A stretch of 64,000 nt of DNA from Paragordius varius (Eukaryota; Animalia; Nematomorpha). The stretch lies in contig OZ176055.1 in the NCBI GenBank assembly GCA_964247055.1, positions 3,906,001-3,970,000 on the forward strand, in the 5' to 3' direction. Both the position numbers and the translations under genes were made by a program. The notes under the pieces were generated by a model that did not search any database, had not been told where the DNA came from, and saw only the letters and a list, made by a program, of their open reading frames with translations. How positions within the stretch are numbered: position 1 is the stretch's first letter; every line of letters starts with the position of its first letter. Positions 23,701 to 50,400 of this stretch are shown here, piece by piece.

Positions 23701-26700
23701 TTTCAACAGTCAAATAATGTTAACCATTATATAATAAGTATTTCCAAAAATCAACCATCAATTTTCACCAATCAAATAATGTTAACCGTTCTATAATAAG
23801 TATTTCCAACAATCAACCATCACTTTCTACGAATCAAATTATATTTACCGGGCTATAATAAGTATTTCAAACAATCAACCATCAATTTTCAACAATCAAA
23901 TAATATTAACCGTGCTATAATAAGTATTTCCAACAATCAACCATCAATTTTCACCAATCAAATAATGTTAACCGTTCTATAAAAAGTATTCTAACAATCA
24001 ACCATCACTTTTCAACAATCAAATAATGTTAACCGTCCTATAATAAGTATTTCCAACAATCAACCATCAATTTTCACCAATCAAATAATGTTAACCGTTC
24101 TATAATAAGTATTTCCAACAATCAACCATCACTTTCTACGAATCAAATTATATTTACCGGGATATAATAAGTATTTCAAACAATCAACCAATTTCCAACA
24201 ATCAAATAATGTTAACCGTCCTATAATAAGTATTTCCAACAATCAACCATCAATTTTCACCAATCAAATAATGTTAACCGTGCTATAATAAGGATTTCCA
24301 ACAATCAACAACAGTCAAATAATGTTAACCATTCTATAATAAGGATTTCCAACAATCAACCATCACTTTTCAACAATCAAATAATGTTAACCGTCCTATA
24401 ATAAGTATTTCCAACAATCAACCATCACTTTTCAACAATCAAATAATGTTAACCGTGCTTTAATAAGTATTTCCAACAATCAACCATCACTTTTCAACAA
24501 TCAAATAATGTTAACCGTGCTTTAATACGTATTTCCAACAATCAACCATCACTTTTCACCAATCAAATGATGTTAACCGTGCTATAATAAGGATTTCCAA
24601 CAATTAACCATCACTTTTCAACAGTCAAATAATGTTAACCATTCTATAATAAGTATTTCCAACAATCAACCATCACTTTTCAACAATCAAATAATGTTAA
24701 CCGTCCTATAATATGTATTTCCAACAATCAACCATCAATTTTCACCAATCAAATAATGTAAACCGTGCTATAATAAGTATTTCCAACAATCAACCATCAC
24801 TTTTCAACAATCAAATAATGTTAACCGTGCTATAATAAGGATTTCCAACAATCAACCATCACTTTTCAACAGTCAGATAATGTTAACTTTCCAACAATCA
24901 ACCATCACTTTTCAACAATCAAATAATGTTAACCGTCCTATAATAAGTATTTCCAACAATCAACCATCACTTTTCAAAAAATCAAATAATGTTAACCGTG
25001 CTTTAATAAGTATTTCCAACAATCAACCATCAATTTTCACCAATCAAATAATGTTAACCGTGCTATAAAAAGTATTTCCAACAATCAACCATCACTTTTC
25101 AATAGTCAAATAATGTTAACCATTATATAATAAGTATTTCCAACAATCAACCATCATTTTTCAACAATTAAAAAATATTAACGTTCTATAATAAGTATTT
25201 CCAACAATCAACCATCACTTTTCAACAATCAAATAATGTTAACCGTCCTATAATAAGTATTTCCAACAATCAACCATCATTTTTCAACAATTAAATAATA
25301 TTAACCGTTCTATAATAAGTATTTCCAACAATCAACCATCACTTTTCAACAATCAAATAATGTTAACCGTCCTATAATAAGTATTTCCAACAATCAACCA
25401 TCACTTTTCAACAATCAAATAATGTTAACCGTCCTATAATAAGTATTTCCAACAATCAACCATCACTTTTCAAGAATCAAATAATGTTAACCGTCCTATA
25501 ATTAGTATTTCCAACAATCAACCATCACTTTTCAACAATCAAATAATGTTAACCGTCCTATAATAAGTATTTCCAACAATCAACCATCACTTTTCAACAA
25601 TCAAATAATGTTAACCGTGCTATAATAAGGATTTCCAACAATCAACCATCACTTTTCACCAATCAAATAATGTTAACCGTGGTATAAAAAGTATTTCCAA
25701 CAATCAACCATCACTTTTCAACAGTCAAATAATGTTAACCATTATATAATAAGTATTTCCAAAAATCAACCATCCATTTTCACCAATCAAATAATGTTAA
25801 CCGTTCTATAATAAGTATTTCCAACAATTAACCATCGCTTTTCAACAATCAAAAAATGTTAACCGTGCTTTAATAAGTATTTCCAACAATCAACCATCAA
25901 TTTTCACCAATCAAATAATGTTAACCGTGCTATAAAAAGTATTTCCAACAATCAACCATCACTTTTCAATAGTCAAATAATGTTAACCATTATATAATAA
26001 GTATTTCCAACAATCAACCATCATTTTTCAACAATTAAAAAATATTAACCGTTCTATAATAAGTATTTCCAACAATCAACCATCACTTTTCAACAATCAA
26101 ATAATGTTAACCGTCCTATAATAAGTATTTCCAACAATCAACCATCAATTTTCACCAATCAAATAATGTTAACCGTGCTATAATAAGGATTTCCAACAAT
26201 CACCAACAGTCAAATAATGTTAACCATTCTATAATAAGGATTTCCAACAATCAACCATCACTTTTCAACAATCAAATAATGTTAACCGTCCTATAATAAG
26301 TATTTCCAACAATCAACCATCACTTTTCAACAATCAAATAATGTTAACCGTGCTTTAATAAGTATTTCCATAAAACAACCATCACTTTTCAACAATCAAA
26401 TAATGTTAACCGTGCTTTAATACGTATTTCCAACAATCAACCATCACTTTTCACCAATCAAATGATGTTAACCGTGCTATAATAAGGATTTCCAACAATT
26501 AACCATCACTTTTCAACAGTCAAATAATGTTAACCATTCTATAATAAGTATTTCCAACAATCAACCATCACTTTTCAACAATCAAATAATGTTAACCGTC
26601 CTATAATATGTATTTCCAACAATCAACCATCACTTTTCAATAGTCAAATAATGTTAACCATTATATAATAAGTATTTCCAACAATCAACCATCATTTTTC

Positions 26701-29700
26701 AACAATTAAAAAATAACAACGTTCTATAATAAGTATTTCCAACAATCAACCATCACTTTTCAACAATCAAATAATGTTAACCGTCCTATAATAAGTATTT
26801 CCAACAATCAACCATCACTGTTCAACAATCAAATAATGTTAACCGTGCTTTAATAAGTATTTCCAACAATCAACCATCAATTTTCACCAATCAAATAATG
26901 TTAACCGTGGTATAAAAAGTATTTCCAACAATCAACCATCACTTTTCAACAGTCAAATAATGTTAACCATTATATAATAAGTATTTCCAAAAATCAACCA
27001 TCAATTTTCACCAATCAAATAATGTTAACCGTTCTATAATAAGTATTTCCAACAATCAACCATCACTTTTAAACAATCAAATAATGTTAACCGTGCTATA
27101 ATAAATATTTCCAACAATCAACCATCACTTTTCAACAATCAAATAATGTTAACCGTCCTATGATAAGTATTTCCAACAATCAACCATCAATTTTCACCAA
27201 TCAAATAATGTTAACCGTTCTATAAAAAGTATTCTAACAATCAACCATCACTTTTCAACAATCAAATAATGTTAACCGTCCTATAATAAGTATTTCCAAC
27301 AATCAACCATCAATTTTCACCAATCAAATAATGTTTACCGTTTTATAATAAGTATTTCCAACAATCAACCATCACTTTCTACGAATCAAATTATATTTAC
27401 CGGGATATAATAAGTATTTCCAACAATCAACCATCACTTTTCAACAATCAAATAATGTTAACCGTGCTTTAATAAATATTTCCATCAATCAACCATCACT
27501 TTTCAACAATCAAATAATGTTAACCGTGCTTTAATACGTATTTCCAACAATCAACCATCACTTTTCACCAATCAAATGATGTTAACCGTGCTATAATAAG
27601 GATTTCCAACAATCAACCATCACTTTTCAACAGTCAAATAATGTTAACCATTCTATAATAAGTATTTCCAACAATCAACCATCACTTTTCAACAATCAAA
27701 TAATGTTAACCGTCCTATAATAAGTATTTCCAACAATCAACCATCAATTTTCACCAATCAAATAATGTTAACCGTGCTATAATAAGTATTTCCAACAATC
27801 AACCATCACTTTTCAACAATCAAATAATGTTAACCGTGCTATAATAAGGATTTCCAACAATCAACCATCACTTTTCAACAGTCAAATAATGTTAACCATT
27901 CTATAATAAGTATTTCCAACAATCAACCATCACTTTTCAACAATCAAATAATGTTAACCGTCCTATAATAAGTATTTCCAACAATCAACCATCACTTTTC
28001 ACCAATCAAATAATGTTAACCGTGCTTTAATAAGTATTTCCAACAATCAACCATCACTTTTCAACAATCAAATAATGTTAACCGTCCTATGATAAGTATT
28101 TCCAACCATCACTTTTCACCAATCAAATAATGTTAACCGTGCTTTAATAAGTATTTCCAACAATCAACCATCACTTTTCAACAGTCAAATAATGTTAACC
28201 ATTCTATAATAAGTATTTCCAACAATCAACCATCACTTTTCAACAATCAAATAATGTTAACCGTCCTATAATAAGTATTTCCAACAATCAACCATCACTT
28301 TTCACCAATCAAATAATGTTAACCGTGCTTTAATAAGTATTTCCAACAATCAACCATCACTTTTCAACAATCAAATAATGTTAACCGTCCTATAATATGT
28401 ATTTCCAACAATCAACCATCACTTTTCAATAGTCAAATAATGTTAACCATTATATAATAAGTATTTCCAACAATCAACCATCATTTTTCAACAATTAAAA
28501 AATAACAACGTTCTATAATAAGTATTTCCAACAATCAACCATCACTTTTCAACAATCAAATAATGTTAACCGTCCTATAATAAGTATTTCCAACAATCAA
28601 CCATCACTGTTCAACAATCAAATAATGTTAACCGTGCTTTAATAAGTATTTCCAACAATCAACCATCAATTTTCACCAATCAAATAATGTTAACCGTGGT
28701 ATAAAAAGTATTTCCAACAATCAACCATCACTTTTCAACAGTCAAATAATGTTAACCATTATATAATAAGTATTTCCAAAAATCAACCATCAATTTTCAC
28801 CAATCAAATAATGTTAACCGTTCTATAATAAGTATTTCCAACAATCAACCATCACTTTTAAACAATCAAATAATGTTAACCGTGCTATAATAAATATTTC
28901 CAACAATCAACCATCACTTTTCAACAATCAAATAATGTTAACCGTCCTATGATAAGTATTTCCAACAATCAACCATCAATTTTCACCAATCAAATAATGT
29001 TAACCGTTCTATAAAAAGTATTCTAACAATCAACCATCACTTTTCAACAATCAAATAATGTTAACCGTCCTATAATAAGTATTTCCAACAATCAACCATC
29101 AATTTTCACCAATCAAATAATGTTTACCGTTTTATAATAAGTATTTCCAACAATCAACCATCACTTTCTACGAATCAAATTATATTTACCGGGATATAAT
29201 AAGTATTTCCAACAATCAACCATCACTTTTCAACAATCAAATAATGTTAACCGTGCTTTAATAAATATTTCCAACAATCAACCATCACTTTTCAACAATC
29301 AAATAATGTTAACCGTGCTTTAATACGTATTTCCAACAATCAACCATCACTTTTCACCAATCAAATGATGTTAACCGTGCTATAATAAGGATTTCCAACA
29401 ATCAACCATCACTTTTCAACAGTCAAATAATGTTAACCATTCTATAATAAGTATTTCCAACAATCAACCATCACTTTTCAACAATCAAATAATGTTAACC
29501 GTCCTATAATAAGTATTTCCAACAATCAACCATCAATTTTCACCAATCAAATAATGTTAACCGTGCTATAATAAGTATTTCCAACAATCAACCATCACTT
29601 TTCAACAATCAAATAATGTTAACCGTGCTATAATAAGGATTTCCAACAATCAACCATCACTTTTCAACAGTCAAATAATGTTAACCATTCTATAATAAGT

Positions 29701-32700
29701 ATTTCCAACAATCAACCATCACTTTTCAACAATCAAATAATGTTAACCGTCCTATAATAAGTATTTCCAACAATCAACCATCACTTTTCACCAATCAAAT
29801 AATGTTAACCGTGCTTTAATAAGTATTTCCAACAATCAACCATCACTTTTCAACAATCAAATAATGTTAACCGTCCTATGATAAGTATTTCCAACCATCA
29901 CTTTTCACCAATCAAATAATGTTAACCGTGCTTTAATAAGTATTTCCAACAATCAACCATCACTTTTCAACAATCAAATAATGTTAACCGTGCTATAATA
30001 AGGATTTCCAACAATCAACCATCACTTTTCAACAGTCAAATAATGTTAACCATTCTATAATAAGTATTTCCAACAATCAACCATCACTTTTCACCAATCA
30101 AATAATGTTAACCGTGCTTTAATAAGTATTTCCAACAATCAATAATCACTTTTCAACAATCAAATAATGTTAACCGTGCTTTAATAAGTATTTCCAACAA
30201 TCAACCATCACTTTTCAACAATCAAATAATGTTAACCGTGCTATAATAAGGATTTCCAACAATCAACCATTACTTTTCAACAGTCAAATAATGTTAACCA
30301 TTCTATAATAAGTATTTCCAACAATCAACCATCACTTTTCACCAATCAAATAATGTTAACCGTGCTTTAATAAGTATTTCCAACAATCAATAATCACTTT
30401 TCAACAATCAAATAATGTTAACCGTCCTATGATAAGTATTTCCAACCATCACTTTTCACCAATCAAATAATGTTAACCGTGCTTTAATAAGTTTTTCAAC
30501 AATCAAATAATATTAACCGTTCTATAATAAGTATTTCCAACAATCAACCATCACTTTTCAACAATCAAATAATGTTAACCGTCCTATAATAAGTATTTCC
30601 AACAATCAACCATCACTTTTCACCAATCAAATAATGTTAACCGTGCTTTAATAAGTATTTCCAACAATCAACCATCACTTTTCAACAATCAAATAATGTT
30701 AACCGTGCTATAATAAGGATTTCCAACAATCAACCATCACTTTTCAACAGTCAAATAATGTTAACCATTCTATAATAAGTATTTCCAACAATCAACCATC
30801 AATTTTCACCAATCAAATAATGTTAACCGTTCTATAATAAGTATTTCCAACAATTAACCATCGCTTTTCAACAATCAAAAAATGTTAACCGTGCTTTAAT
30901 AAGTATTTCCAACAATCAACCAACAATTTTCACCAATCAAATAATGTTAACCGTGCTATAAAAAGTATTTCCAACAATCAACCATCACTTTTCAATAGTC
31001 AAATAATGTTAACCATTATATAATAAGTATTTCCAACAATCAACCATCATTTTTCAACAATTAAAAAATATTAACCGTTCTATAATAAGTATTTCCAACA
31101 ATCAACCATCACTTTTCAACAATCAAATAATGTTAACCGTCCTATAATAAGTATTTCCAACAATCAACCATCACTGTTCAACAATCAAATAATGTTAACC
31201 GTGCTTTAATAAGTATTTCCAACAATCAACCATCAATTTTCACCAATCAAATAATGTTAACCGTGGTATAAAAAGTATTTCCAACAATCAACCATCACTT
31301 TTCAACAGTCAAATAATGTTAACCATTATATAATAAGTATTTCCAAAAATCAACCATCAATTTTCACCAATCAAATAATGTTAACCGTTCTATAATAAGT
31401 ATTTCCAACAATCAACCATCACTTTCTACGAATCAAATTATATTTACCGGGTTATAATAAGTATTTCAAACAATCAACCATCAATTTTCAACAATCAAAT
31501 AATATTAACCGTGCTATAATAAGTATTTCCAACAATCAACCATCAATTTTCACCAATCAAATAATGTTAACCGTTCTATAAAAAGTATTCTAACAATCAA
31601 CCATCACTTTTCAACAATCAAATAATGTTAACCGTCCTATAATAAGTATTTCCAACAATCAACCATCAATTTTCACCAATCAAATAATTTTAACCGTTCT
31701 ATAATAAGTATTTCCAACAATCAACCATCACTTTCTACGAATCAAATTATATTTACCGGGATATAATAAGTATTTCAAACAATCAACCAATTTCCAACAA
31801 TCAAATAATGTTAACCGTCCTATAATAAGTATTTCCAACAATCAACCATCAATTTTCACCAATCAAATAATGTTAACCGTGCTATAATAAGGATTTCCAA
31901 CAATCAACAACAGTCAAATAATGTTAACCATTCTATAATAAGGATTTCCAACAATCAACCATCACTTTTCAACAATCAAATAATGTTAACCGTCCTATAA
32001 TAAGTATTTCCAACAATCAACCATCACTTTTCAACAATCAAATAATGTTAACCGTGCTTTAATAAGTATTTCCAACAATCAACCATCACTTTTCAACAAT
32101 CAAATAATGTTAACCGTGCTTTAATACGTATTTCCAACAATCAACCATCACTTTTCACCAATCAAATGATGTTAACCGTGCTATAATAAGGATTTCCAAC
32201 AATTAACCATCACTTTTCAACAGTCAAATAATGTTAACCATTCTATAATAAGTATTTCCAACAATCAACCATCACTTTTCAACAATCAAATAATGTTAAC
32301 CGTCCTATAATATGTATTTCCAACAATCAACCATCAATTTTCACCAATCAAATAATGTAAACCGTGCTATAATAAGTATTTCCAACAATCAACCATCACT
32401 TTTCAACAATCAAATAATGTTAACCGTGCTATAATAAGGATTTCCAACAATCAACCATCACTTTTCAACAGTCAGATAATGTTAACTTTCCAACAATCAA
32501 CCATCACTTTTCAACAATCAAATAATGTTAACCGTCCTATAATAAGTATTTCCAACAATCAACCATCACTTTTCAAAAAATCAAATAATGTTAACCGTGC
32601 TTTAATAAGTATTTCCAACAATCAACCATCAATTTTCACCAATCAAATAATGTTAACCGTGCTATAAAAAGTATTTCCAACAATCAACCATCACTTTTCA

Positions 32701-35700
32701 ATAGTCAAATAATGTTAACCATTATATAATAAGTATTTCCAACAATCAACCATCATTTTTCAACAATTAAAAAATATTAACGTTCTATAATAAGTATTTC
32801 CAACAATCAACCATCACTTTTCAACAATCAAATAATGTTAACCGTCCTATAATAAGTATTTCCAACAATCAACCATCATTTTTCAACAATTAAATAATAT
32901 TAACCGTTCTATAATAAGTATTTCCAACAATCAACCATCACTTTTCAACAATCAAATAATGTTAACCGTCCTATAATAAGTATTTCCAACAATCAACCAT
33001 CACTTTTCAACAATCAAATAATGTTAACCGTCCTATAATAAGTATTTCCAACAATCAACCATCACTTTTCAAGAATCAAATAATGTTAACCGTCCTATAA
33101 TTAGTATTTCCAACAATCAACCATCACTTTTCAACAATCAAATAATGTTAACCGTCCTATAATAAGTATTTCCAACAATCAACCATCACTTTTCAACAAT
33201 CAAATAATGTTAACCGTGCTATAATAAGGATTTCCAACAATCAACCATCACTTTTCACCAATCAAATAATGTTAACCGTGGTATAAAAAGTATTTCCAAC
33301 AATCAACCATCACTTTTCAACAGTCAAATAATGTTAACCATTATATAATAAGTATTTCCAAAAATCAACCATCCATTTTCACCAATCAAATAATGTTAAC
33401 CGTTCTATAATAAGTATTTCCAACAATTAACCATCGCTTTTCAACAATCAAAAAATGTTAACCGTGCTTTAATAAGTATTTCCAACAATCAACCATCAAT
33501 TTTCACCAATCAAATAATGTTAACCGTGCTATAAAAAGTATTTCCAACAATCAACCATCACTTTTCAATAGTCAAATAATGTTAACCATTATATAATAAG
33601 TATTTCCAACAATCAACCATCATTTTTCAACAATTAAAAAATATTAACCGTTCTATAATAAGTATTTCCAACAATCAACCATCACTTTTCAACAATCAAA
33701 TAATGTTAACCGTCCTATAATAAGTATTTCCAACAATCAACCATCAATTTTCACCAATCAAATAATGTTAACCGTGCTATAATAAGGATTTCCAACAATC
33801 ACCAACAGTCAAATAATGTTAACCATTCTATAATAAGGATTTCCAACAATCAACCATCACTTTTCAACAATCAAATAATGTTAACCGTCCTATAATAAGT
33901 ATTTCCAACAATCAACCATCACTTTTCAACAATCAAATAATGTTAACCGTGCTTTAATAAGTATTTCCAACAATCAACCATCACTTTTCAACAATCAAAT
34001 AATGTTAACCGTGCTTTAATACGTATTTCCAACAATCAACCATCACTTTTCACCAATCAAATGATGTTAACCGTGCTATAATAAGGATTTCCAACAATTA
34101 ACCATCACTTTTCAACAGTCAAATAATGTTAACCATTCTATAATAAGTATTTCCAACAATCAACCATCACTTTTCAACAATCAAATAATGTTAACCGTCC
34201 TATAATATGTATTTCCAACAATCAACCATCACTTTTCAATAGTCAAATAATGTTAACCATTATATAATAAGTATTTCCAACAATCAACCATCATTTTTCA
34301 ACAATTAAAAAATAACAACGTTCTATAATAAGTATTTCCAACAATCAACCATCACTTTTCAACAATCAAATAATGTTAACCGTCCTATAATAAGTATTTC
34401 CAACAATCAACCATCACTGTTCAACAATCAAATAATGTTAACCGTGCTTTAATAAGTATTTCCAACAATCAACCATCAATTTTCACCAATCAAATAATGT
34501 TAACCGTGGTATAAAAAGTATTTCCAACAATCAACCATCACTTTTCAACAGTCAAATAATGTTAACCATTATATAATAAGTATTTCCAAAAATCAACCAT
34601 CAATTTTCACCAATCAAATAATGTTAACCGTTCTATAATAAGTATTTCCAACAATCAACCATCACTTTCTACGAATCAAATTATATTTACCGGGATATAA
34701 TAAGTATTTCAAACAATCAACCAATTTTCAACAATCAAATAATGTTAACCGTCCTATAATAAGTATTTCCAACAATCAACCATCAATTTTCACCAATCAA
34801 ATAATGTTAACCGTGCTATAATAAGGATTTCCAACAATCAACAACAGTCAAATAATGTTAACCATTCTATAATAAGGATTTCCAACAATCAACCATCACT
34901 TTTCAACAATCAAATAATGTTAACCGTCCTATAATAAGTATTTCCAACAATCAACCATCACTTTTCAACAATCAAATAATGTTAACCGTGCTTTAATAAG
35001 TATTTCCAACAATCAACCATCACTTTTCAACAATCAAATAATGTTAACCGTGCTTTAATACGTATTTCCAACAATCAACCATCACTTTTCACCAATCAAA
35101 TGATGTTAACCGTGCTATAATAATGATTTCCAACAATTAACCATCACTTTTCAACAGTCAAATAATGTTAACCATTCTATAATAAGTATTTCCAACAATC
35201 AACCATCACTTTTCAACAATCAAATAATGTTAACCGTCCTATAATATGTATTTCCAACAATCAACCATCAATTTTCACCAATCAAATAATGTAAACCGTG
35301 CTATAATAAGGATTTCCAACAATCAACCATCACTTTTCAACAGTCAGATAATGTTAACTTTCCAACAATCAACCATCACTTTTCAACAATCAAATAATGT
35401 TAACCGTCCTATAATAAGTATTTCCAACAATCAACCATCACTTTTCAAAAAATCAAATAATGTTAACCGTGCTTTAATAAGTATTTCCAACAATCAACCA
35501 TCAATTTTCACCAATCAAATAATGTTAACCGTGCTATAAAAAGTATTTCCAACAATCAACCATCACTTTTCAATAGTCAAATAATGTTAACCATTATATA
35601 ATAAGTATTTCCAACAATCAACCATCATTTTTCAACAATTAAAAAATATTAACGTTCTATAATAAGTATTTCCAACAATCAACCATCACTTTTCAACAAT

Positions 35701-36450
35701 CAAATAATGTTAACCGTCCTATAATAAGTATTTCCAACAATCAACCATCATTTTTCAACAATTAAATAATATTAACCGTTCTATAATAAGTATTTCCAAC
35801 AATCAACCATCACTTTTCAACAATCAAATAATGTTAACCGTCCTATAATAAGTATTTCCAACAATCAACCATCACTTTTCAAGAATCAAATAATGTTAAC
35901 CGTCCTATGATTAGTATTTCCAACAATCAACCATCACTTTTCAACAATCAAAAAATGGTTACCGTGCTTTAATAAGTATTTCCAACAATCAACCATCAAT
36001 TTTCACCAATCAAATAATGTTAACCGTGCTATAAAAAGTATTTCCAACAATCAACCATCACTTTTCAACAGTCAAATAATGTTAACCATTATATAATAAG
36101 TATTTCCAACAATCAACCATCATTTTTCAACAATTAAATAATATTAACCGTTCTATAATAAGTATTTCCAACAATCAACCATCACTTTCTACGAAGCAAA
36201 TTATATTTACCGGGCTATAATAAGTATTTCCAACAATCAACCATCACTTTTCAACAATCAAATAATATTAACCGTGCTATAATAAGTATTTCCAACAATC
36301 AACCATCAATTTTCACCAATCAAATAATGTTAACCGTGCTATAAAAAGTATTTCCAACAATCAACCATCACTTTTCAACAGTCAAATAATGTTAACCATT
36401 ATATAATAAGTATTTCCAACAATCAACCATCACTTTTCAACAATCAAATA
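17764..36450. repeat. Satellite DNA array, ~300 copies of a 62-bp monomer (consensus AACCGTGCTATAATAAGTATTTCCAACAATCAACCATCACTTTTCAACAATCAAATAATGTT), with higher-order structure
   Basis: Direct reading. The monomer is a 41-bp plus a 21-bp subunit, both starting TTT(C/T)CAACAATCAA. The + strand is strongly G-poor. Degenerate precursor-like sequence starts ~17190; the right end at ~36450 is abrupt. Confidence 0.98.
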
Positions 36451-36965
36451 AGATTTTTCGATTTTTATAATATCTTGTATAAATTTGCTATGAATTAAAA
36501 AATGTTATAGAAATTTATAAATGATGTAGATTTATGTTTGTCAATTAAACAACCGAAAAGTGTTATTCCGAAGAAACTATATTAACATTTAGGGTTAATG
36601 TCATTTAGCCATTGTATGATGTGAACGAATGCATGTCATTCCGAATTAATCATTTAAAAAAAATTTCCATTTATAATCGTGTACTGTTAGACCACCAGCC
36701 AGTTAAATTAATTTATTTTTATATCGGTGGAAGTAATAATGTATAAAATACAAGTTGCCAAGGCATTTAACGATATTTTAAGATTTTATGTCTATTATTG
36801 TGTTTTTAATATAGATTAAATATTTCACAGTTTTTATAACATATATTACAATTCCAAAAAAAGCCCTTGACTGAATTCTGGATAGAAGCTAGAACTGAAT
36901 TTCCCACAATCGCCAATATAAATGTACTTCTGCCATTCAATACCATAGAATGTGAATTTAAGTCA

Positions 36966-37064
36966 AGATAGTAAGACGGTAAGATAGTAAGACGGTAAGA
37001 CAGTAAGATAGTAAGACGGTAAGACAGTAAGATAGTAAGACAGTAAGCATAAGACAGTAAGATA
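36966..37064 (+). repeat. ~12 copies of 8-bp GTAAGA(CG/TA/CA) at the outer end of the left arm
   Basis: Direct reading. Confidence 0.95.
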
Positions 37065-37531
37065 TTTGTATAAAAAACATACATTCGTGATAAGTCTGCT
37101 AATAGGAGACTTATCAAAATTTCAAAGTATTATAACTTGAAAAATATTGCATCTTTTTGAATTCTGTAAACTGGAGGATTGAAAGTCAGGTATCCTTTAC
37201 AAATAATATATAGGGTTGAATGAAAATGCGTAATTCTTTCGACACGAAACTGAGTTTACTAAACACCTCCAAAAATTGTATAAATCTTAAAAAATATATA
37301 AAAAATCTTGGGTATTATAGAAGAAAATGGCATCTATACCATTGTTTCTTATTTGGTAAATATTTTTTTTATATTTTTACAGTTTTAACAATTTTTTTTA
37401 AAAAAATTGTACTTCATGGTTCTGACAACAACAAAAATAAATATAGCTAAATATTATTATAATAAATTTGAATTTTGTATTCTAAAATCAGCTTTTAACC
37501 CGATAATAACCGTTTTCCCCTAAAATTTTAC

Positions 37532-38734
37532 ATGCAGAACGATATCAGATCCAGGGAAGTTTTGGTGGAATTACTTGAAAAGTAAATTATTAATAAATAA
37601 TTAAAAATTTTTAGATCATCCCTTCCATATTTTCCAGACAATAAGTATATTTTTATAATAATTATTTAGTCAGTTAACAAACGAATCGTCCTCAGTCGCT
37701 ACTTATAATAATATACAGTAATACATATTGTGATGTTTAGATTACAGACTAAAAAATCAAAAAGTAGACGTTCAATAGCCCCCGAAGATTATAAAACTTT
37801 ACTTCGATTCAGCCCAGAGACTGTGAAGTTCATTACAGATGAAATATTTCCGGTCTATTTAAGGCCTAAGAAAAAAACAGGTACTTTAACTTACCTACGA
37901 TATGTGGGAATTTTCTTGAGGTATTTAGCCGACCCAGGATTCCAATATGGGGTTTCCAATGATTTTGGGATAGAACGTAGCTACGCAACTAAAATTATTT
38001 CTTATGTTAGTTATTATTGTAGTAGGCTACGTTCTAAGTGGATAAGATTTCCCAAAAATCAATCGGAAATGGAATCATCTCAGGCATTATGGGCGGAAAA
38101 ATATAAAATTCCATGTATCGTTGGTGCGATTGATTGCACGCACATTGAAATCAATAAACCCACCAAGGAATCGTTGAATTATCTTAATCGAAAAATTTTT
38201 TACAGTTTTAATATACAAGCCACCATCAATTCCAATGAGATATTCACATCTCTAGAGGTAAAATATCCAGGAAGGGTACATGATGCAAGGATATTTGAAA
38301 ATAGCGATCTATGTACAAATATGTTAAGATTGAATCAGTATGGATCTCTATTAGGTGATAGTGGTTATGGTTTATCAATGTCCATTATTCGACCATATCG
38401 TAATCCTAGCAATCCCAGGGAGAAATATTTTAATAAAATTCATGCTAAAGAACGTTCAGTGATTGAGCGTGTTTTCGGTCAATGGAAGAGAAGATTTCCC
38501 ATTTTGGGAAATCGTATAAGATTACACACCGATAATGTCCCTGATATTATTCTTTCATGTGGAGTTCTCTATAATATAGGGAAAGCCCGAAATGAATTTT
38601 CAGATATAGATGAAATACTTTCTGACCTCGATGATATTCCTGATGAGTATTTATCATTAACAACGGCACAAGAGCGCCAGGCTGGAAAAATGAGAAGAGA
38701 TCATATAATGAATATTTTATATAATAATATATAA
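37532..38734 (+). CDS. Harbinger/HARBI1-like DDE transposase, ~373 aa. Exons 37532-37581, 37615-37644, 37670-37717, 37741-38734
   Basis: Catalytic-type motifs GAIDCTHI, YLNRKIFYSFNIQ, YPGRVHDARIF, LLGDSGY and ERSVIERVFGQWKRRF are intact. The three short 5' exons are inferred from GT-AG micro-introns that keep the frame. The transposase call is firm; the N-terminus is less certain. Confidence 0.9.
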
Positions 38735-38893
38735 TAATTATTATATGATTTACATCTTGTTGTGTTAGTGATTTATATATTCAGGAATAGATCGAGAATA
38801 TGCTCATTTATTTAGCGTTTTTGTGTATAAATTTCATTATTTTGTTATCATCAAGATTGCAAGGAATGCTATATGGTTGGATTATGGATTATG

Positions 38894-39801
38894 ATGAATT
38901 TTATTAAAATATTTCTCCCTGGGATTGCTAGGATTACGATATGGTCGAATAATGGACATTGATAAACCATAACCACTATCACCTAATAGAGATCCATACT
39001 GATTCAATCTTAACATATTTGTACATAGATCGCTATTTTCAAATATCCTTGCATCATGTACCCTTCCTGGATATTTTACCTCTAGAGATGTGAATATCTC
39101 ATTGGAATTGATGGTGGCTTGTATATTAAAACTGTAAAAATTTTTTCGATTAAGATAATTCAACGATTCCTTGGTGGGTTTATTGATTTCAATGTGCGTG
39201 CAATCAATCGCACCAACGATACATGGAATTTTATATTTTTCCGCCCATAATGCCTGAGATGATTCCATTTCCGATTGATTTTTGGGAAATCTTATCCACT
39301 TAGAACGTAGCCTACTACAATAATAACTAACATAAGAAATAATTTTAGTTGCGTAGCTACGTTCTATCCCAAAATCATTGGAAACCCCATATTGGAATCC
39401 TGGGTCGGCTAAATACCTCAAGAAAATTTCCACATATCGTTGGTAAGTTAAAGTACCTGTTTTTTTCTTAGGCCTCAAATTGACCGGAAATATTTCATCT
39501 GTAATGAACTTCACAGTCTCTGGGCTGAATCGAAGTAAAGTTTTATAATCTTCGGGGGCTATTGAACGTCTACTTTTTGATTTTTTAGTCTGTAATCTAA
39601 ACATCACAATATGTATTACTGTATATTATTATAAGTAGCGACTGAGGACGATTCGTTTGTTAACTGACTAAATAATTATTATAAAAATATACTTATTGTC
39701 TGGAAAATATGGAAGGGATGATCTAAAATTTTTTATTTATTAATAATTTACTTTTCAAGTAATTCCACCAAAACTTCCCTGGATCTGATATCGTTCTGCA
39801 T
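38894..39801 (-). pseudogene. Inverted, 3'-truncated copy of the Harbinger transposase (ends KYFNKIH, lacks the IERVFG motif)
   Basis: Identical to the left copy except 5 substitutions in the shared exon-4 segment and a 4-nt shorter intron 1. Runs into a stop at 38882. Confidence 0.92.
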
Positions 39802-40265
39802 GTAAAATTTTAGGGGAAAACGGTTATTATCGGGTTAAAAGCTGATTTTAGAATACAAAATTCAAATTTATTATAATAATATTTAGCTATATTTATTTTT
39901 GTTGTTGTCAGAACCATGAAGTACAATTTTTTTAAAAAAAATTGTTAAAACTGTAAAAATATAAAAAAAATATTTACCAAATAAGAAACAATGGTATAGA
40001 TGCCATTTTCTTCTATAATACCCAAGATTTTTTATATATTTTTTAAGATTTATACAATTTTTGGAGGTGTTTAGTAAACTCAGTTTCGTGTCGAAAGAAT
40101 TACGCATTTTCACTCAACCCTATATATTATTTGTAAAGGATACCTGACTTTCAATCCTCCAGTTTACAGAATTCAAAAAGATGCAATATTTTTCAAGTAA
40201 TACTTTGAAATTTTGATAAGTCTCCTATTAGCAGACTTATCACGAATGTATGTTTTTTATACAAA

Positions 40266-40327
40266 TATCTTACTGTCTTATGCTTACTGTCTTACTATCT
40301 TTCTGTCTTACCGTCTTACTATCTTAC
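40266..40327 (-). repeat. 8 copies of the 8-bp GTAAGAYR repeat at the outer end of the right arm
   Basis: Reverse complement of 36966-37064 with fewer units. Confidence 0.95.
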
Positions 40328-41953
40328 TGACTTAAATTCACATCAGTCATATATTTATGTGAAGTTACTTTCTCAGCTTTAACATACATTAAATTCCGAT
40401 ATCGTTCAGTGATAAAAAATGTTGAAGAGGTCTTACGTCCAGCAGTTTCAAACATTACACCAAGATTTGATTTGTTATGCAATAAAAAACGGCAACATCT
40501 ATCTCATTAAATTTTTATATTCGAGAGAATTAAAACGGTCAGAATCCACTTTTGATTTTGAAACTATAATAAAAACATTTCTAGTGCAAATTTCAATATT
40601 TGATTTTTATAGGTTTCAAAACGAATTCTAAATTTATATATTTTCATATGCATATGTATATTGTTATCTAATAAATATAACAGCAAAAAATATTAATTTA
40701 TTTTTCTTTTATATTTGCTGGGGTCTTTAAGAAACTCCTAATCATAAATAGGGTCAGGATATACAAAAGTTTAAGCCCTGGTTTTAATAATTAATAACTT
40801 TAACTATCGAATTTTCTTGACCATATTTTTTAGTGTATTATCAACAATCCACCATCACTTTAAGTAAATTTTTGTGTCATTTTGGCTTTTTAACCTGTTT
40901 CATAACCTAAAAAATTCAACTAGATAGAAGCTTTTTTCTAAGATAGTAGATATTTTAAAACTTTTCAAAAATTTTATGCAACTTCCCATGCAAATTTTCT
41001 TAAAAAAATTTATATAAGCCTTTATTAATTTTTTATAAATTGAAAGTTTTTTATTCAAAACGCCATAGCTTTAATTTTTGTAAATCTTAAATGACCTTTG
41101 CAATGTAGAATCTTAATAAAAATTTACTTTGAATGTATACATATTCTATCAAATAAAATTTATTGACGCTTTTTCTTGTATTTTGTTTATTTAATTTTAA
41201 GATTAGTAATAATTATTATTAGGTATTTGGTAACTATAGTCATTTCACTATAATATATAAAATGTTAAAATTTTTATATAATTCATACATTATGCATATG
41301 CGCAATCAATAATAACAAATGTAATTTGTTTAAATAACTTTAGATAAATCAAAAAAACATTACTTATTGATTGCGCACAAAGTTTTCCTGGAATTAATCA
41401 TATAATGTTCAGAGTATGCAACCGAAAATTTTGTGAACATTATTATAATAACTAAAGATAGCAAAATGTATGATGTATAGATAAAAAATTGCCCTAAAAC
41501 GTTGTTAAATCATAAATTTGATTAATCTATTCTATATTTGATTAAACACTTAAAAATTGCATTGATGTCAAAAGTGCCACACGCTAACCCAGTCATATAA
41601 TATAGCAACTTTACTACAAAAAAGCTGCCAAATATATCATGGTTATGAAAATTTATTACTCTTTAATATTTTTATAATTTATTATAAAAAAACTATAATT
41701 ATTCAGAGTCTATTTTTAAACCATAAATATCCCCTATATTTTACAAAACTCATTATTTGATTCATTTGTTAATACGGAACGTCAATATATATAATATAAA
41801 TGGAATTTATTTTTGATAACATTAGTTTCAGATTAATATGATTTTTGCACAAATAATTTTATAATAACTTAATATAATCACTGTAAAAAATGAATAGCGA
41901 ATGCTAACCAATACTCAATATTGAAATAGTAAATGATAGTTTATTAAACGCAA

Positions 41954-44900
41954 TTAAGGTTTCCCATTTAACTTTTCCCTCTTCCATTTTTGTATTTTCT
42001 CCTTCAAATCCAAATCACTTTTAACCATTTCCAGTGTCAAAGGTAAACGATTAAATGGGTCATTTTGATCACTAAATCAAAAATTTAGATAATATTTAAA
42101 AAAATACAGTTATAGTGGCAAAAGAGGATCGCATTTTTGAAAATGGCCATTGCATAAGTAACTGTCCAATCTTTTTGAATTTTTGGTCTCTTACTACATC
42201 AAGGTCATGTTGAACGTATTTTCACAAAATGGATATTATGGTCATCTTGGTCATATAAATATGATAACCCTATCCGAGCTTCATTCGACATCAACCTGAA
42301 AAAAAATTAATGTGGCCGTTCCCTTGAAACTTGAATAAAAAAGATTGATCTGGACTTCCAATAATTTAAAGTAACAAAAACGGTTTATCAATAAAAATAT
42401 CATAAAGAAGAGGATATTATCCGATGATATACTATCAAGAATTATTAAACAATAAATAGAACAACACATATTACAAAACCACATTATTGATACACATAAA
42501 AATCACACAAAATATGTAACACTTCAAATACTTGATGGTCTCAGACATATGACAATTAGGAAATAAATTTTTGTCAGTTACATACTGGATTAGCTTATAT
42601 AAGCCTGAAATGAAATGCAACAAATATTACTCAAGAAATCATCATATAAAACCGGTTGCGCCAATCACATAGTCTGACAATGCTAATAATATTAACACCG
42701 CATTTCAAAGCATTCAAAAATGCCCATAAAAATGTTGGAGATAAATAAAAAATTTAATATTTTTGATTAGATGTTTATTTCTAGATTACCTTAATAAATG
42801 CCTAGATATTGTGGATTTATCGACTATCTTCCCCGAGGTAGGCAATACTACTGGGTCTTCCATCAAAGTATTCATAATGGGATCCAAGAATTCATCTGGG
42901 GCATCGCCTAAAAGCTCATCTTCCTGAAATTGTTGTTGCGCGCAATCCTGAACCACATTGTGTGAAAATATATTTTATGCTTAAATCGTTATTATGATTG
43001 AAGTTTTAACTGGTATTAATCATATATTACAAAATGAAAGAAATAAATAAATATAAGTCGCGGTGTCGATTCTAAAACTTTGGCACCAATTAACTAAAAT
43101 CTAAGTCTATACAAGCCTTTATCATATTATAAATAAAATTTAATGTTTAAACAAAACTAATTAATATATATGAAAAACAAAAATAATAAATAATGTTTTA
43201 CCTTAATTCGCTTTGCAACATTAGCAATTCTTTCACAAAGAGTATTTGCTATAACGTAAGTCCGTTCAGCCTCAGCTTTTTGCTTTAAGATTTGTGCTGG
43301 GTCTCTTCCAAAAGCACGTCTCGAAAAATTAATATTGCCAGCAAAAAAATCTTGATAAGACGCGCTCGTAGTATCAGACAGTGCTTTTTCCCCTATCCGT
43401 TGAAGCACGTCTCGTGTTTGAACGAACAAATCATCACTGTAACTGCGCCCATCTGCACTAACTATAATATAGGGAGGTAAAATACTTAATTAAAATGCTT
43501 AAAATTCATTAAACCTTAGTAAGATAAAATACTTATTGAGTAAAATTAATAGATATAACTAGTAAACCATGAAGAAATTTTAATTTAACACATATGCGCC
43601 CAAAAAGCTAATAATCTAATTTTATTTTTTAATAAAAATCTTAACTTCCCTAGACAAATTATAGAGTAGAATTGCCGACCAGCTCAAAGACAAAGGGTCA
43701 TAACCCTATTCGCGACCACAAAAAAACGACCTAGGTCATTTGGATTTTTTTCATTTTTAACGATTTACAATTTACATGAAAACAAAACCTTGTATATATT
43801 AATTTATATATGGTATATAAAATACATTTCAAATGATAATTTAAAAGTGGGTTTTACCTGTTTATTTAATTGTTAACGCAAGCCTTATGATTTGGCTGTA
43901 CTCATACTTTAATAATGATTTCAGGAAAGCTCGTTATTTGTAGACAATCAATAAATTAAATTATCAGTGAATTGGTGTTGGTATATTTAAAACCTTTTTT
44001 AAATAATTTTTATAAATATTTATGTATGTAATATTTTGAAGCTGGTGCATTCATTATAAAAAATTTTAATTAAATCATTTTGTTATTGACATTGCAGAAT
44101 GAAATATTATTAAAATTCAGTATAAATTGCAATTTAATTTTTGAAAAAAGTCCATCATTTCTGAAAAAAGGGTCATTATACGGATATTGACTCAGAAATA
44201 ATTTTCTCTCATTTTTATTAGAAAGTTAAGAACTTTGCAATAAGGACTAATGAAAGCTAACACTCAACTGGTCTACACTGATAATGAAAAAATTGGTGTT
44301 ATCTTATATTTACAAGTATTGTGCACGAGTCCCACGTCTTGGCCGCTGGTGTAAAAATGTTTGAGGTCACAATCGTGCTTAAAACAACGCGGACTTGAAA
44401 TAAAAAACCTCAAACTAGGTATGCTGATAAACAAAAATTTGGCTTCATATATACATATATTTAATAAATATAAGCTTTTGAATGAAAGCTTTTATGTCAA
44501 TCAAATCACCATGAAATCATCAGAGGGGTGAATTTTCTTTTAGATGTGTGTTTAACGAAGTTTCACAATCATGCTGGCCTATTCGCATTATTGTTGACCA
44601 ATTGATAATACAGTAGCTTGTGTTATGAAACAAATTTTGTATACAATTATAAACAAAAAGAAAAAAATGTTTAATTACAAATCTTAATTGATTTTACCAA
44701 TACTGCCAGTTGAAGAAAAACAATAATGTGAATAGGCCAGAATTGGATATTGTACATATACTTCATTCTATATATGTTTGTTCAAATTTTTCAAAGTTAA
44801 AAAGTCTTATTTTTTCCCTTTCACAATTTAAATCCAAAAAATTACAACTACTATGTTGAAATATTATACCTGCTTTACAAAATGCATCTTGACTTTGAGT

Positions 44901-47408
44901 TAATACGGTCAAACGTTCTTCTACATTATGCAATGGCATGTTATTACTGGAGGGACATGTTTTAAGACTTTTTTGCGCTCTTGCATGAGATATTTCAAGG
45001 TCCGGATCAACTTTTTGCGCAAAAAATGAATTATTACTACGATGGGATATAAATTGCCTGTATTCTTCGGCACTATTCCCCAAATTAATGTAAATCTTGC
45101 AAATGGTCAAAACAATGTATTGAGGCTTGAATTCGTACACGCTGAAATCTTTGACTTTAAGCGTTTTTTTCTTGGGTCCAACCTTGTAATAGTTGGGGAT
45201 ATAGCATATTATATAAATATGTGAAAAAAATGTCATTGTGAAAAACAATTTTCATTTTTTCGAAAATGATTATATAAACAATCTGAACGATATCATATAA
45301 AAAGTCAAAAGCAAGGGCGTGCCGAGCGTTTGCGGCGCCCGGAGCATAATACTCTTGTGGCCTCTCCTCTTTTTAAAAGCCAATAAAATAATTTATTCAA
45401 TAAAAAATACAAACGTCGCTACCTAAACACCTTAGATAAAACCGGCTTGTACAATCATATACATTTAAATTCTATTGTGATATATATAAATATTTATAAT
45501 TTAAGTTATTCATATTAAATAAATACAGGTAAATATTCAAATAAATTCGATAATAAGGGTTATTCATATAAAAACAACATTGATGTTGCATATATAAATT
45601 GATCTTATAATAATGGCGAATAATAATATTGATTTAAATATATGTAAATCTTGCATAAAATTTATAATCATTGCATAAAAAACTTATTTTATGATAGATA
45701 ATAATTAGATTATAAAATTGAATGCGTAACTAACTTACGTCTTGAATCCTTAGGCCCAAAAGTTATCCAAATCAAAATATCAAATTTTAAAAATATGGTT
45801 TTGCTCATAAAAAGTATAAGCTTATTAGTTTTTATATTCCATCTTATAATTTTCTTTATGTAAATGAAAAAAGTGCTTCCTTAATTTTTTGCTATTTAAT
45901 TTTAAAACATCGACTATTAAATATAAAACTTACCAGGTGTAGGAGGAAATAATTCAACATACTGGCGATGCGATTAACCATGGTCGGATGAGTAAATATT
46001 GTATGAATATATCGTGTAAGATAGGCCAAAACGCGTATTGTTTCAAGTCCCAAAACATTGTGATATCTAAATAGTTAATATATCTATGTATATACAATCA
46101 AATCTTTTCATAAACATCCAAAAAACTAAGGTTATGATAACAGGCGACAAAAAGACTGATAAAATCAAATACCCATGCCGCGCATGCTTAAAAAATGTGG
46201 GACAAACTCCATCCAATGCACTAAGTGTCAATACTGGTTATACAAACCATGTTCGGGATTAAATGGAACTTTAAAAAATAATAATAATTACATATGTCCC
46301 CCATGTACTCTATCCAAACAATATATTCCACCCATAGAAGCTGCCTACCTTAAAATAGGTGACAGCGAAATTCAAAAAGTAGAAAAGTTTACCTACCTTG
46401 GTGATACCATTTCCGCTTAAGGAAGTTCATCTGAAGCCATCAAAAATCGTATAAGAATTGGTAGGGGTAGATACAACCAATATAAACACCTATTTACCAA
46501 CAAGCACATATCAAAAACAAAATATACCTAATTGGCGTCAGACCTACTATAACTTATGCTTGCGAAACATGGCAAAAAAGTAAAACACAGGAAAATATGC
46601 TGGATAATATGGAACAAAAAATGATAAATACATTTAAGCGAACAATCTCTCATGATAAACAAATCCTACCAATTTCAAAATATATTCAAATCCGTAGACT
46701 TGGCTATTACGGTCACATTCAAAGATTAGATAACGATAATTGGATTAAAAATATAACAACCTTAAGCCAAACAAACAAAACAGAGTTGGTCGTCCAGCAA
46801 TAACATGGGACAAAAACATTATCCAAGACCTACAGGCCAAAAACATAAAAGCCGGGGATTGGTTAAATAAAAATTCCTTCTATGCAATGATCAAACACCT
46901 AAACCCCGTCACGGAATGCCAAGGGACCCCTTGACAACAGCCATCTATCTATCTATCTATCATTGAAAAAAAACAGTTATTAGATGCTAATAAAAAACGT
47001 ATACTATTTCAAAATTTTTAATATTGTCCAACAATGTTTTCGAATTTATATTATACAATTTTTATTAAAAAACTATTTTTATCCTATTTCGAAATATAAG
47101 CAGTATTATTTATTTAAGAATGCTAAAAAAATATGAAAATATTAATTTTAATGTTTATGTATAATGGAGTTGTAGAAAAAAGTCACAGAATTTCATTTAA
47201 CTGTATATCCAAAAATAAAAATTATTATTTGAAAGCCAAATAAAAATTGATAATTCTAAAAAACCTTGCCATCAGACCCAAATGCTGTAAATTATTTTCA
47301 TTTTCGTTGCGTTGTTCGGGTGTAACTTTTTCCCATGCCCCACTATCCTTAGCCAATTGCAATTCCCGTATTTGACTCATATACTATACAATGTTAGGGA
47401 GAATAAAA

Positions 47409-47466: not shown

Positions 47467-50400
47467 AATTATTGTAAAAATAGGCTTAAAAAATTTTTTA
47501 ACCACTTATATTCCATTAAAGGCCTTACGTTTTCTTATAACTTTAATTCATAATAGTAAGTTTTTAAATCACCAACTAACGACCTATTTTCAAGAACGTT
47601 AAGTTTTATTATAAGTTTGGCTAAATCAAAAACAATTTTTATATCCAATATTTATACATAAACATATACTCAAGTAATATACTAAAAAAATTTTAATAAC
47701 AATACTGAGTTTATAATTAAAATCTCGGTTCTATAAGTTCAAAATAATATAAATATTAATTTTATAATATTATTTCAGAATTAGATATTTACCGATAATG
47801 CTTCATCCAGTAAAAATATGGCATCATTTATTAGTAAATTCAAAAAACGCAGGAAAAGTGGTGGATTTATCGATTCGATTCTCGCCTCTGCATCCGTGGC
47901 CATTTTCTGTACATTTCAATATAATTTTTTAATACAAAATATTTTGCAGTAAAACTTCATATGTAAACATTATTAAAAAATTAAAATTGTAAAAAAAACA
48001 CTTAATTAAAAAAATTGAGATATTTAAAAAATAAAAGTGCACATGAATCTTTATAAAAGTTTACAAGTAAAATAACCTTAAACTATTAGACGCCAAATAT
48101 TTAAAAAAATTGCTTAAAACCGACGAATAAATTATATTATAATGAAATAAATAATTAATTATCGGGATTTGATTGTATTTTGACAACAATTTTATAAAGT
48201 ATAAAATCAATGTTAGTTTTGATTAAATTCGGGTGCTATCTAAATTTTATACATTATAGCAAAAATAAAACCTTTTCTTAATCAAAACATAAATATATTT
48301 TTAGATAATCATGTTTATTTAGCCAAACAAACTCTCATAATATTTTTTACAAAAACGCTCTCTGAAGCAAAAAAAACATCCAATTAAAAAAAGAGTAAAG
48401 TGAAATGTACTAGTAAAAAGGTACCTTAACTATCGCTCTATGGATAGGGAATTGCCAAAGATAACGCAATATAACGTACATCGGTCTCCTATAACTAAAT
48501 TTTTGTTCAAAAGCAACATTTTGACCAGTTTCTTCAATGCTTACAAACACATGGATTAAAACTGGAATCAAATAAAGTTTGTAGATTTGATTTTCCCCAT
48601 TTTTCTGTAATTATTTGATATTGAATTTGTGCAAAATATTAGTGGTAAAAAAAATATAATTGTAAAAATGAATTAAATTTTTAAAGCGAAATATATAAAA
48701 AATTTTTTTTAAAATACTCATCGTTAATAAATTTACAATCCATAGTATAGACATGGCTTAAAAATCAAAATTAATTAAGAAATATAAAAGATGTTTAAAT
48801 ATGAAAAAAAATTTTTTTACCGATGTTTGCAAACCATTGAGGGATTTAACAGTAAATAATTGTTCACGTCCACCCTTTAAACCCAAACTGTAAGTATTTG
48901 ATTCCATATAATCGCTAAATAAATAATAAACAAAGATAATTTTATCAAAATAATGTTATGGAAATTAAATACTCACTTATATTCAGATTTAGATCTTGAG
49001 TGGGTGGGTAATTGATCATTCAAGGGCTCTGTAAATAAATAAAAATATAAACGGCTTCATAAAAACACGTTAAAAATATTAAAAAACCCACATTTTATTT
49101 CAAGTGTAAAAATTGTCTTAAGCGTGTTTAACAAAAGAGTAGCTATCACATTTAATGAAAGGGTCTGCCATTTTTAAATTATATTATTAGGTAACGGTAA
49201 AAAAAACTACGATAAGAATTCCAGTATCTTCAAAGATTATAATTACTAAAAATATCGGTAAAGGCTTTAAAACCATTGCCAAACTCAACCATAAATTTGC
49301 TCATACAATGCACGCTTATAATATATTAATAAAGATAAATTAATGAATTAAACTAAATTTATTTATAAAACTATAAAAAAGATGGTTGGGGTTGTGCTTT
49401 AAATCCCGTTTTAAAAAACATATTTTTATAAAAAAAATTAATTAATATATCACGATATTAATTTGGCCCATTCTATTTTATGAAAAATGATAAATTAATT
49501 CTCATTTTCAGTTTCTTACAAACAAGTAAAATAACCATCAAAAGTAGTTAACTATTTCCAAGTTCTTACCATATGTCGATGCAGAGTTTGATAAAACTTT
49601 AAAAGCGGCATAATCCGTTTCCTCGTAAAAAGCAGTTCCTTGGTAAGAACCAATTGATAAATCTTGGTGTCCATTTCCATCATTTTTGGGTTGATTGGAA
49701 AAGTGTGATTGTGAAATCGTTTCGATAAAATCGTCATTGTGTCGCAAATCAAGAGGGACACACGCTTCAAGCGCTTCAGCCATTTTAGCCCGCAAATGTG
49801 GGTTTTTTACACGCTCAGGCGATGCCATAAATGTGAGTATAAGGCAAAGGATAGGCTCCAACATGGTAACATCCATAGACTATACACATATAATTTGGAT
49901 TATTATCATTAAAATATTTTTTTGTATATTATAACGCGGATATTATAACCGTAAAATAATATTTTATTGAAGTATTAATGACAAAAGTGTTTATGTGAAT
50001 TAGCGTTCCAAATTACTATATCCCATGATACTATTTGTGTAAACTATATTATGATATGGAATAAAAAATCAAATTTGTTGTTTAATATTTGGAAATTTTA
50101 CGAAAATATTATGAACAAGAAAATAAAGGCATTTCAATCATTAAAACATTAAGCAATCATAAAAGTTATATGATACTTGTTAAATAAATGCTTTACAATA
50201 AACCTATCCTTAAATTTGTAAAAAAACACAATATTTGATTCGAAAACAGGTAAAAAAAGAGATGACCTCCAAAGTTTCATCGCTAAAGTGCGAAAGTAGA
50301 GACATGTAATCCAACCAATTTTCAATCACAAACTCAGGAATGTGGGATAAAAATGCTTGCAATGATGTGATCAGGCTTTTTTCATCATCTATATTAACAA

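Follow-up and report, generated by a model that had tools for sequence, protein, structure and literature searches.

A 64,000-nucleotide stretch of the Paragordius varius genome (contig OZ176055.1, positions 3,906,001 to 3,970,000 of the forward strand; hereafter the window, numbered from its first letter) contains a transposon of the PIF/Harbinger type in which a transposase gene is followed by an inverted, truncated copy of itself. Our analyses suggest, with a probability of roughly 60%, that this locus represents a copy from a young PIF/Harbinger family, rearranged as a by-product of gap repair or template switching and now stranded. Both of its ends derive from the transposase side of the family, copies with one and the same side at both ends recur among its relatives, and its left terminus is damaged. 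Such a locus is most likely a by-product and not an evolved silencer.

Structure of the rearranged element

A repeat search of the window returned three collinear inverted-repeat blocks that jointly span 36996-38448 and 38889-40334. To set the limits of the arms, the right arm was reverse-complemented and aligned globally with the left; homology ran inward from the tips of the element as far as position 38443 in the left arm and 38894 in the right. The arms measure 1,496 bp (36948-38443) and 1,455 bp (38894-40348) and enclose a spacer of 450 bp (38444-38893), the sequence of which is unique in the genome. With an array of 8-bp repeats near the tips excluded, they differ by seven substitutions and two small indels (ATA at 37132-37134 and TAAT at 37598-37601) over approximately 1,380 bp, giving an identity of approximately 99.4%. 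The 41-bp gap in arm length is made up of fewer 8-bp units on the right, the two indels, and a 3-bp loss at the left tip.

The open reading frame (ORF) of the complete transposase begins with an ATG at 37733 and ends with a stop codon at 38732-38734 on the plus strand, and it matched the PF13359 profile over 158 of 158 positions (E 4.7e-34). Its D, D, and E motifs (GAIDCTH, LLGDSGY, and KERSVIE) align with those of relatives, and the enzyme is a DDE transposase of the DDE_Tnp_4/PIF type. The ORF in the inverted arm encodes the same protein cut at approximately residue 238. The original prediction, made from the letters alone, had described a Harbinger transposase followed by its inverted truncated copy with transposase-side sequence at both ends, and the ORFs and the arm alignment agree with this. 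They likewise confirm the predicted inverted arms of approximately 99% identity, at slightly corrected lengths, the 450-bp spacer carrying the C-terminus of the transposase (its last 97 codons), and a GGATTAT micro-duplication at the junction (38879-38892). The predicted extent of 36950-40343 did locate the element, while its true ends lie at 36948 and 40348 and are flanked by ATA duplications at 36945-36947 and 40349-40351.

These ends could be fixed through the sequence into which the element was inserted. The two flanks are halves of one older sequence: the reading frame of the left flank ends with ...VLLPFNTI and continues in the right flank, where it resumes as IYLCEVTFSALTYIK... and runs on to a stop codon. 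This frame looks like what we take to be the C-terminal dimerisation motif of hAT transposases, and a Pfam search with each split half alone gave no match, the pieces being too short. The target is the remnant of a dispersed repeat whose last 100 bp have more than 40 matches in the genome. In four uninterrupted paralogs, only one triplet, ACA, separates the stretch matching the left flank from that matching the right, at the point where the window has ATA, the element, and ATA, and the boundaries of the element are therefore fixed. The empty sites that had been proposed as a check were thus found as paralogous copies of the flanks; they confirm a clean 3-bp integration and show genuine transposase-mediated insertion at ATA.

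The family and its canonical structure

The genome of the window, 110.6 Mb in 44 contigs with a GC content of 27%, was searched for further members, and approximately 16 copies with about 99% identity to each other were found. In the 12 copies that were aligned, the tips are invariant (GACTGATGTGAATTTAAGTCAG... on one side and ...CTGACTTAAATTCACATCAGTC on the other), and 3-bp duplications (TTA, TAA, ATA, ATT, TTT, or CTA) flank the copies, the window element having ATA. Such A/T-rich 3-bp target-site duplications (TSDs), present in 11 copies besides the window element, together with conserved tips and the transposase type, place the family in PIF/Harbinger. The tip GACTGATGTG... is invariant in nine of ten aligned ends.

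In nearly all of the approximately 16 copies, positions 1-652 are found at each end as an inverted pair. The native terminal inverted repeat (TIR) of the family is thus approximately 652 bp long, and only approximately 845 bp per arm (positions 653-1496) are therefore extra in the window copy. The survey of other copies, which had also been suggested at the outset, thus revealed the outer 652 bp or so of the arms as normal TIR. Identity between the arms within copies (99.3%) is about the same as identity between copies (99.1%). Homogenisation of the arms by conversion or hairpin repair was rejected on these figures, which point to a young burst of the family in which arms have not been homogenised.

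The interiors of the other copies do not match that of the window element; all match the interior of a copy on chromosome 4 (L014:2156-3234). An ORF in this interior starts approximately 50 nt inside the TIR boundary and is transcribed inward. Its match to MADF_DNA_bdg covers 75 of 84 profile positions and is weak, falling below the cut-off (E 1.3e-3; 19.5 bits against 22), and its look-alikes in the Atlas all belong to Myb_DNA-bind_5/4 families at 0.89, a second weak lead that is concordant with the first. The chromosome 4 copy (C4:2328595-2331024, L014) is the sole family member in which the Myb/SANT-like ORF is long; its arms extend to position 684, and it has an additional inner inverted repeat of approximately 155 bp at only about 90% identity. 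The window element contains no Myb/SANT-like gene and no other part of the Myb side. Since deletion derivatives (C9, C8, and C2b) join a transposase-side stub to a Myb-side stub, the canonical order is TIR, transposase, Myb-like gene, TIR, with the two genes convergent. The canonical element would have two identical TIRs of approximately 652 bp, each just upstream of one of the two convergent genes.

The window holds the only copy of the C-terminus of the family's transposase in the genome, and the next open Harbinger transposase is 56% identical. Together, the window copy and the chromosome 4 copy would form a split, two-locus source of the two proteins of the family.

Recurrence of same-side copies

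A structural map of the family comprised 8-10 simple T...M internal deletions (transposase side to Myb side) with junction overlaps of 1-8 nt, and four inverted duplications with the Myb side at both ends (C2c, C6b, C6a, and C3b). The window copy alone has the transposase side at both ends. Same-side copies thus make up 5 of 16, and in these five the arms are extended to 1,080-1,496 bp. The same-side arrangement arose independently at least five times in the family. Because such fold-backs recur, the structure in the window needs no special selective explanation.

Three further loci were observed in this survey. The arms of C3b (C3:7376081-7378160; L030/L016), approximately 1.1 kb long, run through an old deletion junction into transposase fragments (positions 1386-1025 inverted, then 931-1386), and its left TIR is apparently split by an insertion, with positions 23-164 situated 1.5 kb upstream. 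A copy at C3:12523913-12525000 (L029) consists of two abutting arms (positions 25-645 and 25-522) whose flanks are mutually reverse-complementary; either the genome has a larger palindrome here, with flanking DNA included, or the copy is a fold-back artefact of assembly. Finally, a similar palindrome of transposase fragments between TIRs is present in a related Harbinger family of 66-76% identity (C1:12740488-12744313, L041), so the formation of fold-backs is apparently not confined to one family.

Proposed origin and probable loss of mobility

The arrangement is best explained by the following series of events. A copy would have integrated normally at ATA inside the hAT-like remnant, and a later attempt at excision would have led to repair of a double-strand gap, with synthesis running inward from the Myb-side end. 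The nascent strand may then have left the Myb-side repeat and re-annealed to the identical transposase-side repeat, which it can re-invade because both TIRs have the same sequence. Synthesis would next have copied the 5′ region of the transposase as far as position 1496. At this point the two nascent strands would have been identical and not complementary, and end-joining would have left the junction with its two GGATTAT units, the Myb-like gene being lost. Same-side products are what identical TIRs of 652 bp would be expected to give under synthesis-dependent strand annealing. A GGATTAC lies 39 bp beyond the two GGATTAT units, within the right arm, and is compatible with templated filler at the junction, although it proves nothing.

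The left tip of the element reads GA-ATGTG and lacks the CTG of GACTG, i.e., three of the five terminal bases; a GTA is also absent 20 bp farther inward. All nine of the other aligned ends are intact, including the right end of the window element itself. A small terminal deletion of this kind is what imprecise repair after cleavage at one end would probably leave. Because three of five terminal bases are missing on the left and the cognate Myb partner is not aboard, the copy seems unable to move and is probably no longer excisable as a unit. Hence, of the earlier suggestion of a fold-back element with two left ends that can still move, the same-side ends stand, whereas mobility is doubtful.

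Several points weigh against an origin by template switching. Of the seven differences between the arms, six have the consensus state of the family in the right arm and a derived state in the full-length left arm. Five of these six lie in the ORF, namely N42Y, Q55L, E59G, N155I, and a synonymous change, and the sixth lies in the TIR; the residue E59 is shared by two relatives. A skew of 6:1 does not reach significance by itself (p = 0.125). Four substitutions private to the left arm, three of them amino-acid changes, fall within 52 bp (37856-37908; P ~ 0.0025), and a comparison with related families gave no nucleotide match that could have served as a conversion donor for this cluster. That the truncated arm appears nearer to the consensus than the full arm is not predicted by simple copying within one element and remains unexplained. 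Furthermore, no clear microhomology was found at the junction, and filler cannot be told from native 3′ sequence in the GGATTAT units because no other family copy holds positions 1497-1941. The repair mechanism itself is deduced from the form of its product, and a nested insertion followed by TIR recombination could give the same product.

We also considered whether the TIR and ORF parts of the arms had come from two templates with different divergence. This was rejected: the differences are spread evenly, with only their polarity skewed to the left arm.

Whether or not the locus silences, the family would be a clear case of template switching mediated by TIRs and of a stationary transposase source that has a damaged end. 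The locus and its approximately 15 siblings form a compact natural series of TIR-mediated same-side rearrangements, one of which wraps the sole transposase gene of the family in a hairpin.

Alternative explanations

Among the alternatives, a functional silencer of the Mu killer type survives best, although we consider it unlikely. Double-stranded RNA (dsRNA) from the locus would be processed by Dicer into small RNAs that silence the family transposase, post-transcriptionally or through chromatin, and would have ended the burst. When the element was folded as one RNA, 1,444 pairs between the arms were predicted, with a minimum free energy of -2560 kcal/mol compared with about -690 kcal/mol for shuffled sequences. 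The original expectation that a read-through transcript would form a long stem agrees with this fold, in which any transcript crossing the junction would form a stem of approximately 1.44 kb. The region upstream of the transposase start is duplicated, and its two copies, which probably act as promoters, face inward; transcripts from both arms would then overlap in antisense across the spacer, making dsRNA a likely side effect also in the favoured by-product reading. The 3′ part of the spacer has no poly(A) hexamer on the plus strand and two on the minus strand, which carries little weight at 27% GC. Silencing in the manner of Mu killer is, on the modelled structure, possible. The topology of the locus is that of Mu killer (PMC3440606), in that both TIRs are of the transposase side, part of the transposase is present as an inverted copy, and the second gene has been lost, and the locus resembles Ac composite insertions that produce small interfering RNAs (siRNAs; 10.1101/2020.01.07.897926). 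Moreover, the genome encodes one Dicer and two Argonaute/Piwi loci, the assembly retains no canonical autonomous copy of the family, and the divergence of the arms (approximately 0.5%) is of the same order as that of the burst (approximately 0.9% between copies).

On the other hand, the only transposase mRNA that could be targeted today is that of the locus itself. Same-side fold-backs are common accidents, four of them on the Myb side, which makes a selective explanation unnecessary, and a read-through transcript of any of the 16 copies could already form a stem from the 652-bp TIRs. A genome search gave no match to an RNA-dependent RNA polymerase that could amplify the signal, but it lacked a positive control and is hence uninformative.

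A more specific version appears doubtful as well: the last transposase gene of the family, embedded in its own 1.44-kb hairpin in a 'suicide' configuration, would have ended the recent burst and left only non-autonomous copies. If this were true, PIF/Harbinger would gain its first documented trans- or self-silencer, and in a non-plant eukaryote; a limited literature search found no report of a Harbinger hairpin silencer. Repair accidents may then be an intrinsic self-limiting mechanism of transposons with long TIRs; if it is not true, the locus is an ordinary dead-end derivative. As it stands, the locus is a new case of a known kind of structure and involves no new principle unless small RNAs show a function.

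The polarity of the arm differences is relevant to a second alternative, which we judge improbable, namely that a canonical copy received a second, inverted copy in its 3′ region and that recombination between direct TIRs plus an internal deletion removed the Myb side. The right arm being consensus where the left arm is derived would look as if two different copies had been joined, and long identical TIRs are good substrates for recombination. Nevertheless, three events would be required where template switching needs one, the junction shows neither an internal TSD nor an inner terminus, and each of the four Myb-side fold-backs would require the same multi-step history.

Protein repressors of transposition are known from the KP and 66-kDa repressors of the P element and from dominant-negative transposases of mariner or Ac. 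By analogy, the truncated protein of approximately 240 residues encoded by the right arm might poison or compete with the full-length protein, for which we see quite a low likelihood. The Glu is lost from it, whereas the N-terminal DNA-binding region and both Asp motifs remain. Its frame is fully open and shares its ATG and upstream region with the full gene, and where the full-length copy has its four derived residues, it has those of the consensus; an AATAAA also lies approximately 70 nt downstream of its stop codon on its own strand. Yet an open frame is expected anyway in a young duplicate that has diverged by approximately 0.5%, and AATAAA is frequent in DNA of 27% GC.

Lastly, an artefact of assembly or reads, for example a mis-join or a chimeric fold-back read, appears practically excluded: palindromes are a known failure mode of long-read libraries and the copy at C3:12523913-12525000, with its reverse-complementary flanks, could be such a case, but here the arms differ by seven substitutions, two indels, and the number of 8-bp repeats, the distinct unique flanks rejoin into one paralog-verified target with a 3-bp duplication, and the locus lies in the middle of a multi-Mb contig.

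Genomic surroundings

Features of the element, its target, and the nearest gene are listed in Table 1. On the right, the minus strand encodes a gene of the Ufd2/UBE4 type. Its U-box exon lies at 42786-42956 (E 8.6e-15) and its Ufd2P_core exon at 49538-49876; the stop codon is at approximately 41954, 1.6 kb from the element. The original prediction had named this gene UBE4A and proposed it as a source of read-through. Its transcription is indeed directed toward the locus from a stop codon 1.6 kb away. Because nine AATAAA hexamers occur on its strand within the 1.6-kb interval, read-through looks unlikely, and it is not needed for dsRNA because both arms carry an inward-facing upstream region. 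Two short plus-strand ORFs are situated within the region of this gene (46175-46803). One of them is Cys-rich and zinc-finger-like; the second resembles the tail of a retroelement polymerase by eye. The two may represent a fragment of an intronic retroelement. On the left, an 18.4-kb tandem satellite (18004-36451) ends approximately 500 bp from the element. It has a 62-bp unit with higher-order periods of 124 and 186 bp and a very strong strand asymmetry (GC skew about -0.58).

Table 1 Features of the rearranged element and its flanks, in window positions
Feature	Position	Strand	Evidence and remarks
Rearranged PIF/Harbinger element	36948..40348	+	3,401 bp; inverted-repeat search, arm alignment, and empty-site comparison
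Target-site duplication, left, ATA	36945..36947	.	Single triplet at the same point in uninterrupted paralogs of the flanks
Target-site duplication, right, ATA	40349..40351	.	Paralogous empty sites
Left long TIR	36948..37599	+	Family positions 1-652; 8-bp subterminal repeat array at 36965-37062
Damaged left terminus	36948..36970	+	GA-ATGTG... where invariant GACTGATGTG... is expected; CTG missing, and GTA missing after AAGTCA
Complete transposase ORF, DDE_Tnp_4	37733..38734	+	333 aa from ATG; changes N42Y, Q55L, E59G, N155I
Unpaired spacer	38444..38893	+	Final 97 transposase codons, with the catalytic Glu motif; approximately 155 bp of 3′ sequence
GGATTAT x2 at rearrangement junction	38879..38892	+	Copies at 38879-38885 and 38886-38892, directly before the right arm
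Truncated transposase ORF	38882..39604	-	Approximately 240 aa; both catalytic Asp motifs kept, catalytic Glu lacking
Right arm	38894..40348	-	Inverted copy of family positions 1-1496; consensus at 6/7 arm differences
Right long TIR, canonical terminus (...CACATCAGTC)	39737..40348	-	End alignment with family copies
Left half of target remnant	36840..36947	+	Dispersed repeat; frame reads like a hAT-type C-terminal motif
Right half of target remnant	40349..40507	+	Same reading frame continued; paralogous empty sites
Ufd2/UBE4-type gene, 3′ end (U-box exon, last exon)	41954..42956	-	Pfam matches; transcribed toward the element

Comparison with known systems

The PIF/Harbinger signature includes conserved tips, 3-bp TSDs, and a two-gene plan (PMC13668399), and reconstitution work cited in that source indicates that a Myb-like partner is needed for efficient transposition. 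The family of the window element shares with two-gene Harbingers (Harbinger-1M_cIno, PMC13668399; Harbinger3_DR; Ping/Pong) a DDE transposase, a putative Myb/SANT(MADF)-like partner, A/T-rich 3-bp TSDs, and many internally deleted non-autonomous derivatives. It differs in the length of its TIRs, which are typically tens of bp and here 652 bp, reaching to just upstream of both genes; the window copy furthermore lacks the partner gene.

Galileo and other Foldback-like elements of Drosophila (P superfamily) also have very long TIRs (0.6-1.6 kb) that are structurally dynamic and extended by transposase sequence, as in the window element, and termini that are more conserved than the interior. The TIRs of Galileo extend in various ways, including recruitment of part of the TPase ORF, which has been ascribed to abortion or template switching in gap repair (PMC4168063). 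In contrast to the window element, with its DDE_Tnp_4 transposase and 3-bp TSD, they have a P-type transposase and TSDs of 7-8 bp, and Galileo recruits the final piece of the ORF whereas the window element duplicates its 5′ two-thirds. The resemblance to Galileo is one of behaviour only.

How a host first recognises a newly active DNA transposon has been proven genetically in few cases, Mu killer and Ac composite insertions among them. In the latter, self-inflicted inverted duplications trigger siRNA silencing of the family (10.1101/2020.01.07.897926). Like the window locus, they are inverted duplications of transposon sequence produced by aberrant activity of the element itself, and they are transcribed from the promoter of the element or of flanking DNA into dsRNA and siRNAs. 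They are produced when transposition involving sister chromatids is combined with re-replication, and flanking DNA is part of them; the ends of the window element are clean, its TSD is normal, and its flanks are not duplicated.

The closest counterpart in topology is Mu killer, the rearranged MuDR of maize (Slotkin et al. 2003/2005), in which, according to PMC3440606, both TIRs come from the mudrA end, each half holds approximately 1.3 kb of mudrA, and mudrB is lost. The likeness extends to a parent with two convergent genes, each beside a long TIR; to transposase-side TIRs at both ends with an inverted partial duplication of approximately 1.3-1.5 kb (the TIR and the 5′ portion of the transposase gene), the second gene being gone; and to a flanking gene whose transcription points into the locus. 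The initial description of the locus as Mu-killer-like therefore holds for its topology, but with the outer 652 bp or so of the arms being normal TIR and same-side copies recurring (5 of 16), an accident of repair is favoured. The two loci also differ in superfamily, TSD, and host (PIF/Harbinger with 3 bp in a non-plant host; Mutator with 9 bp in a plant), and silencing by Mu killer is genetically proven, whereas the window locus is likened to it by structure. In the window element, moreover, one arm runs on into a complete ORF, which is the only transposase source of the family.

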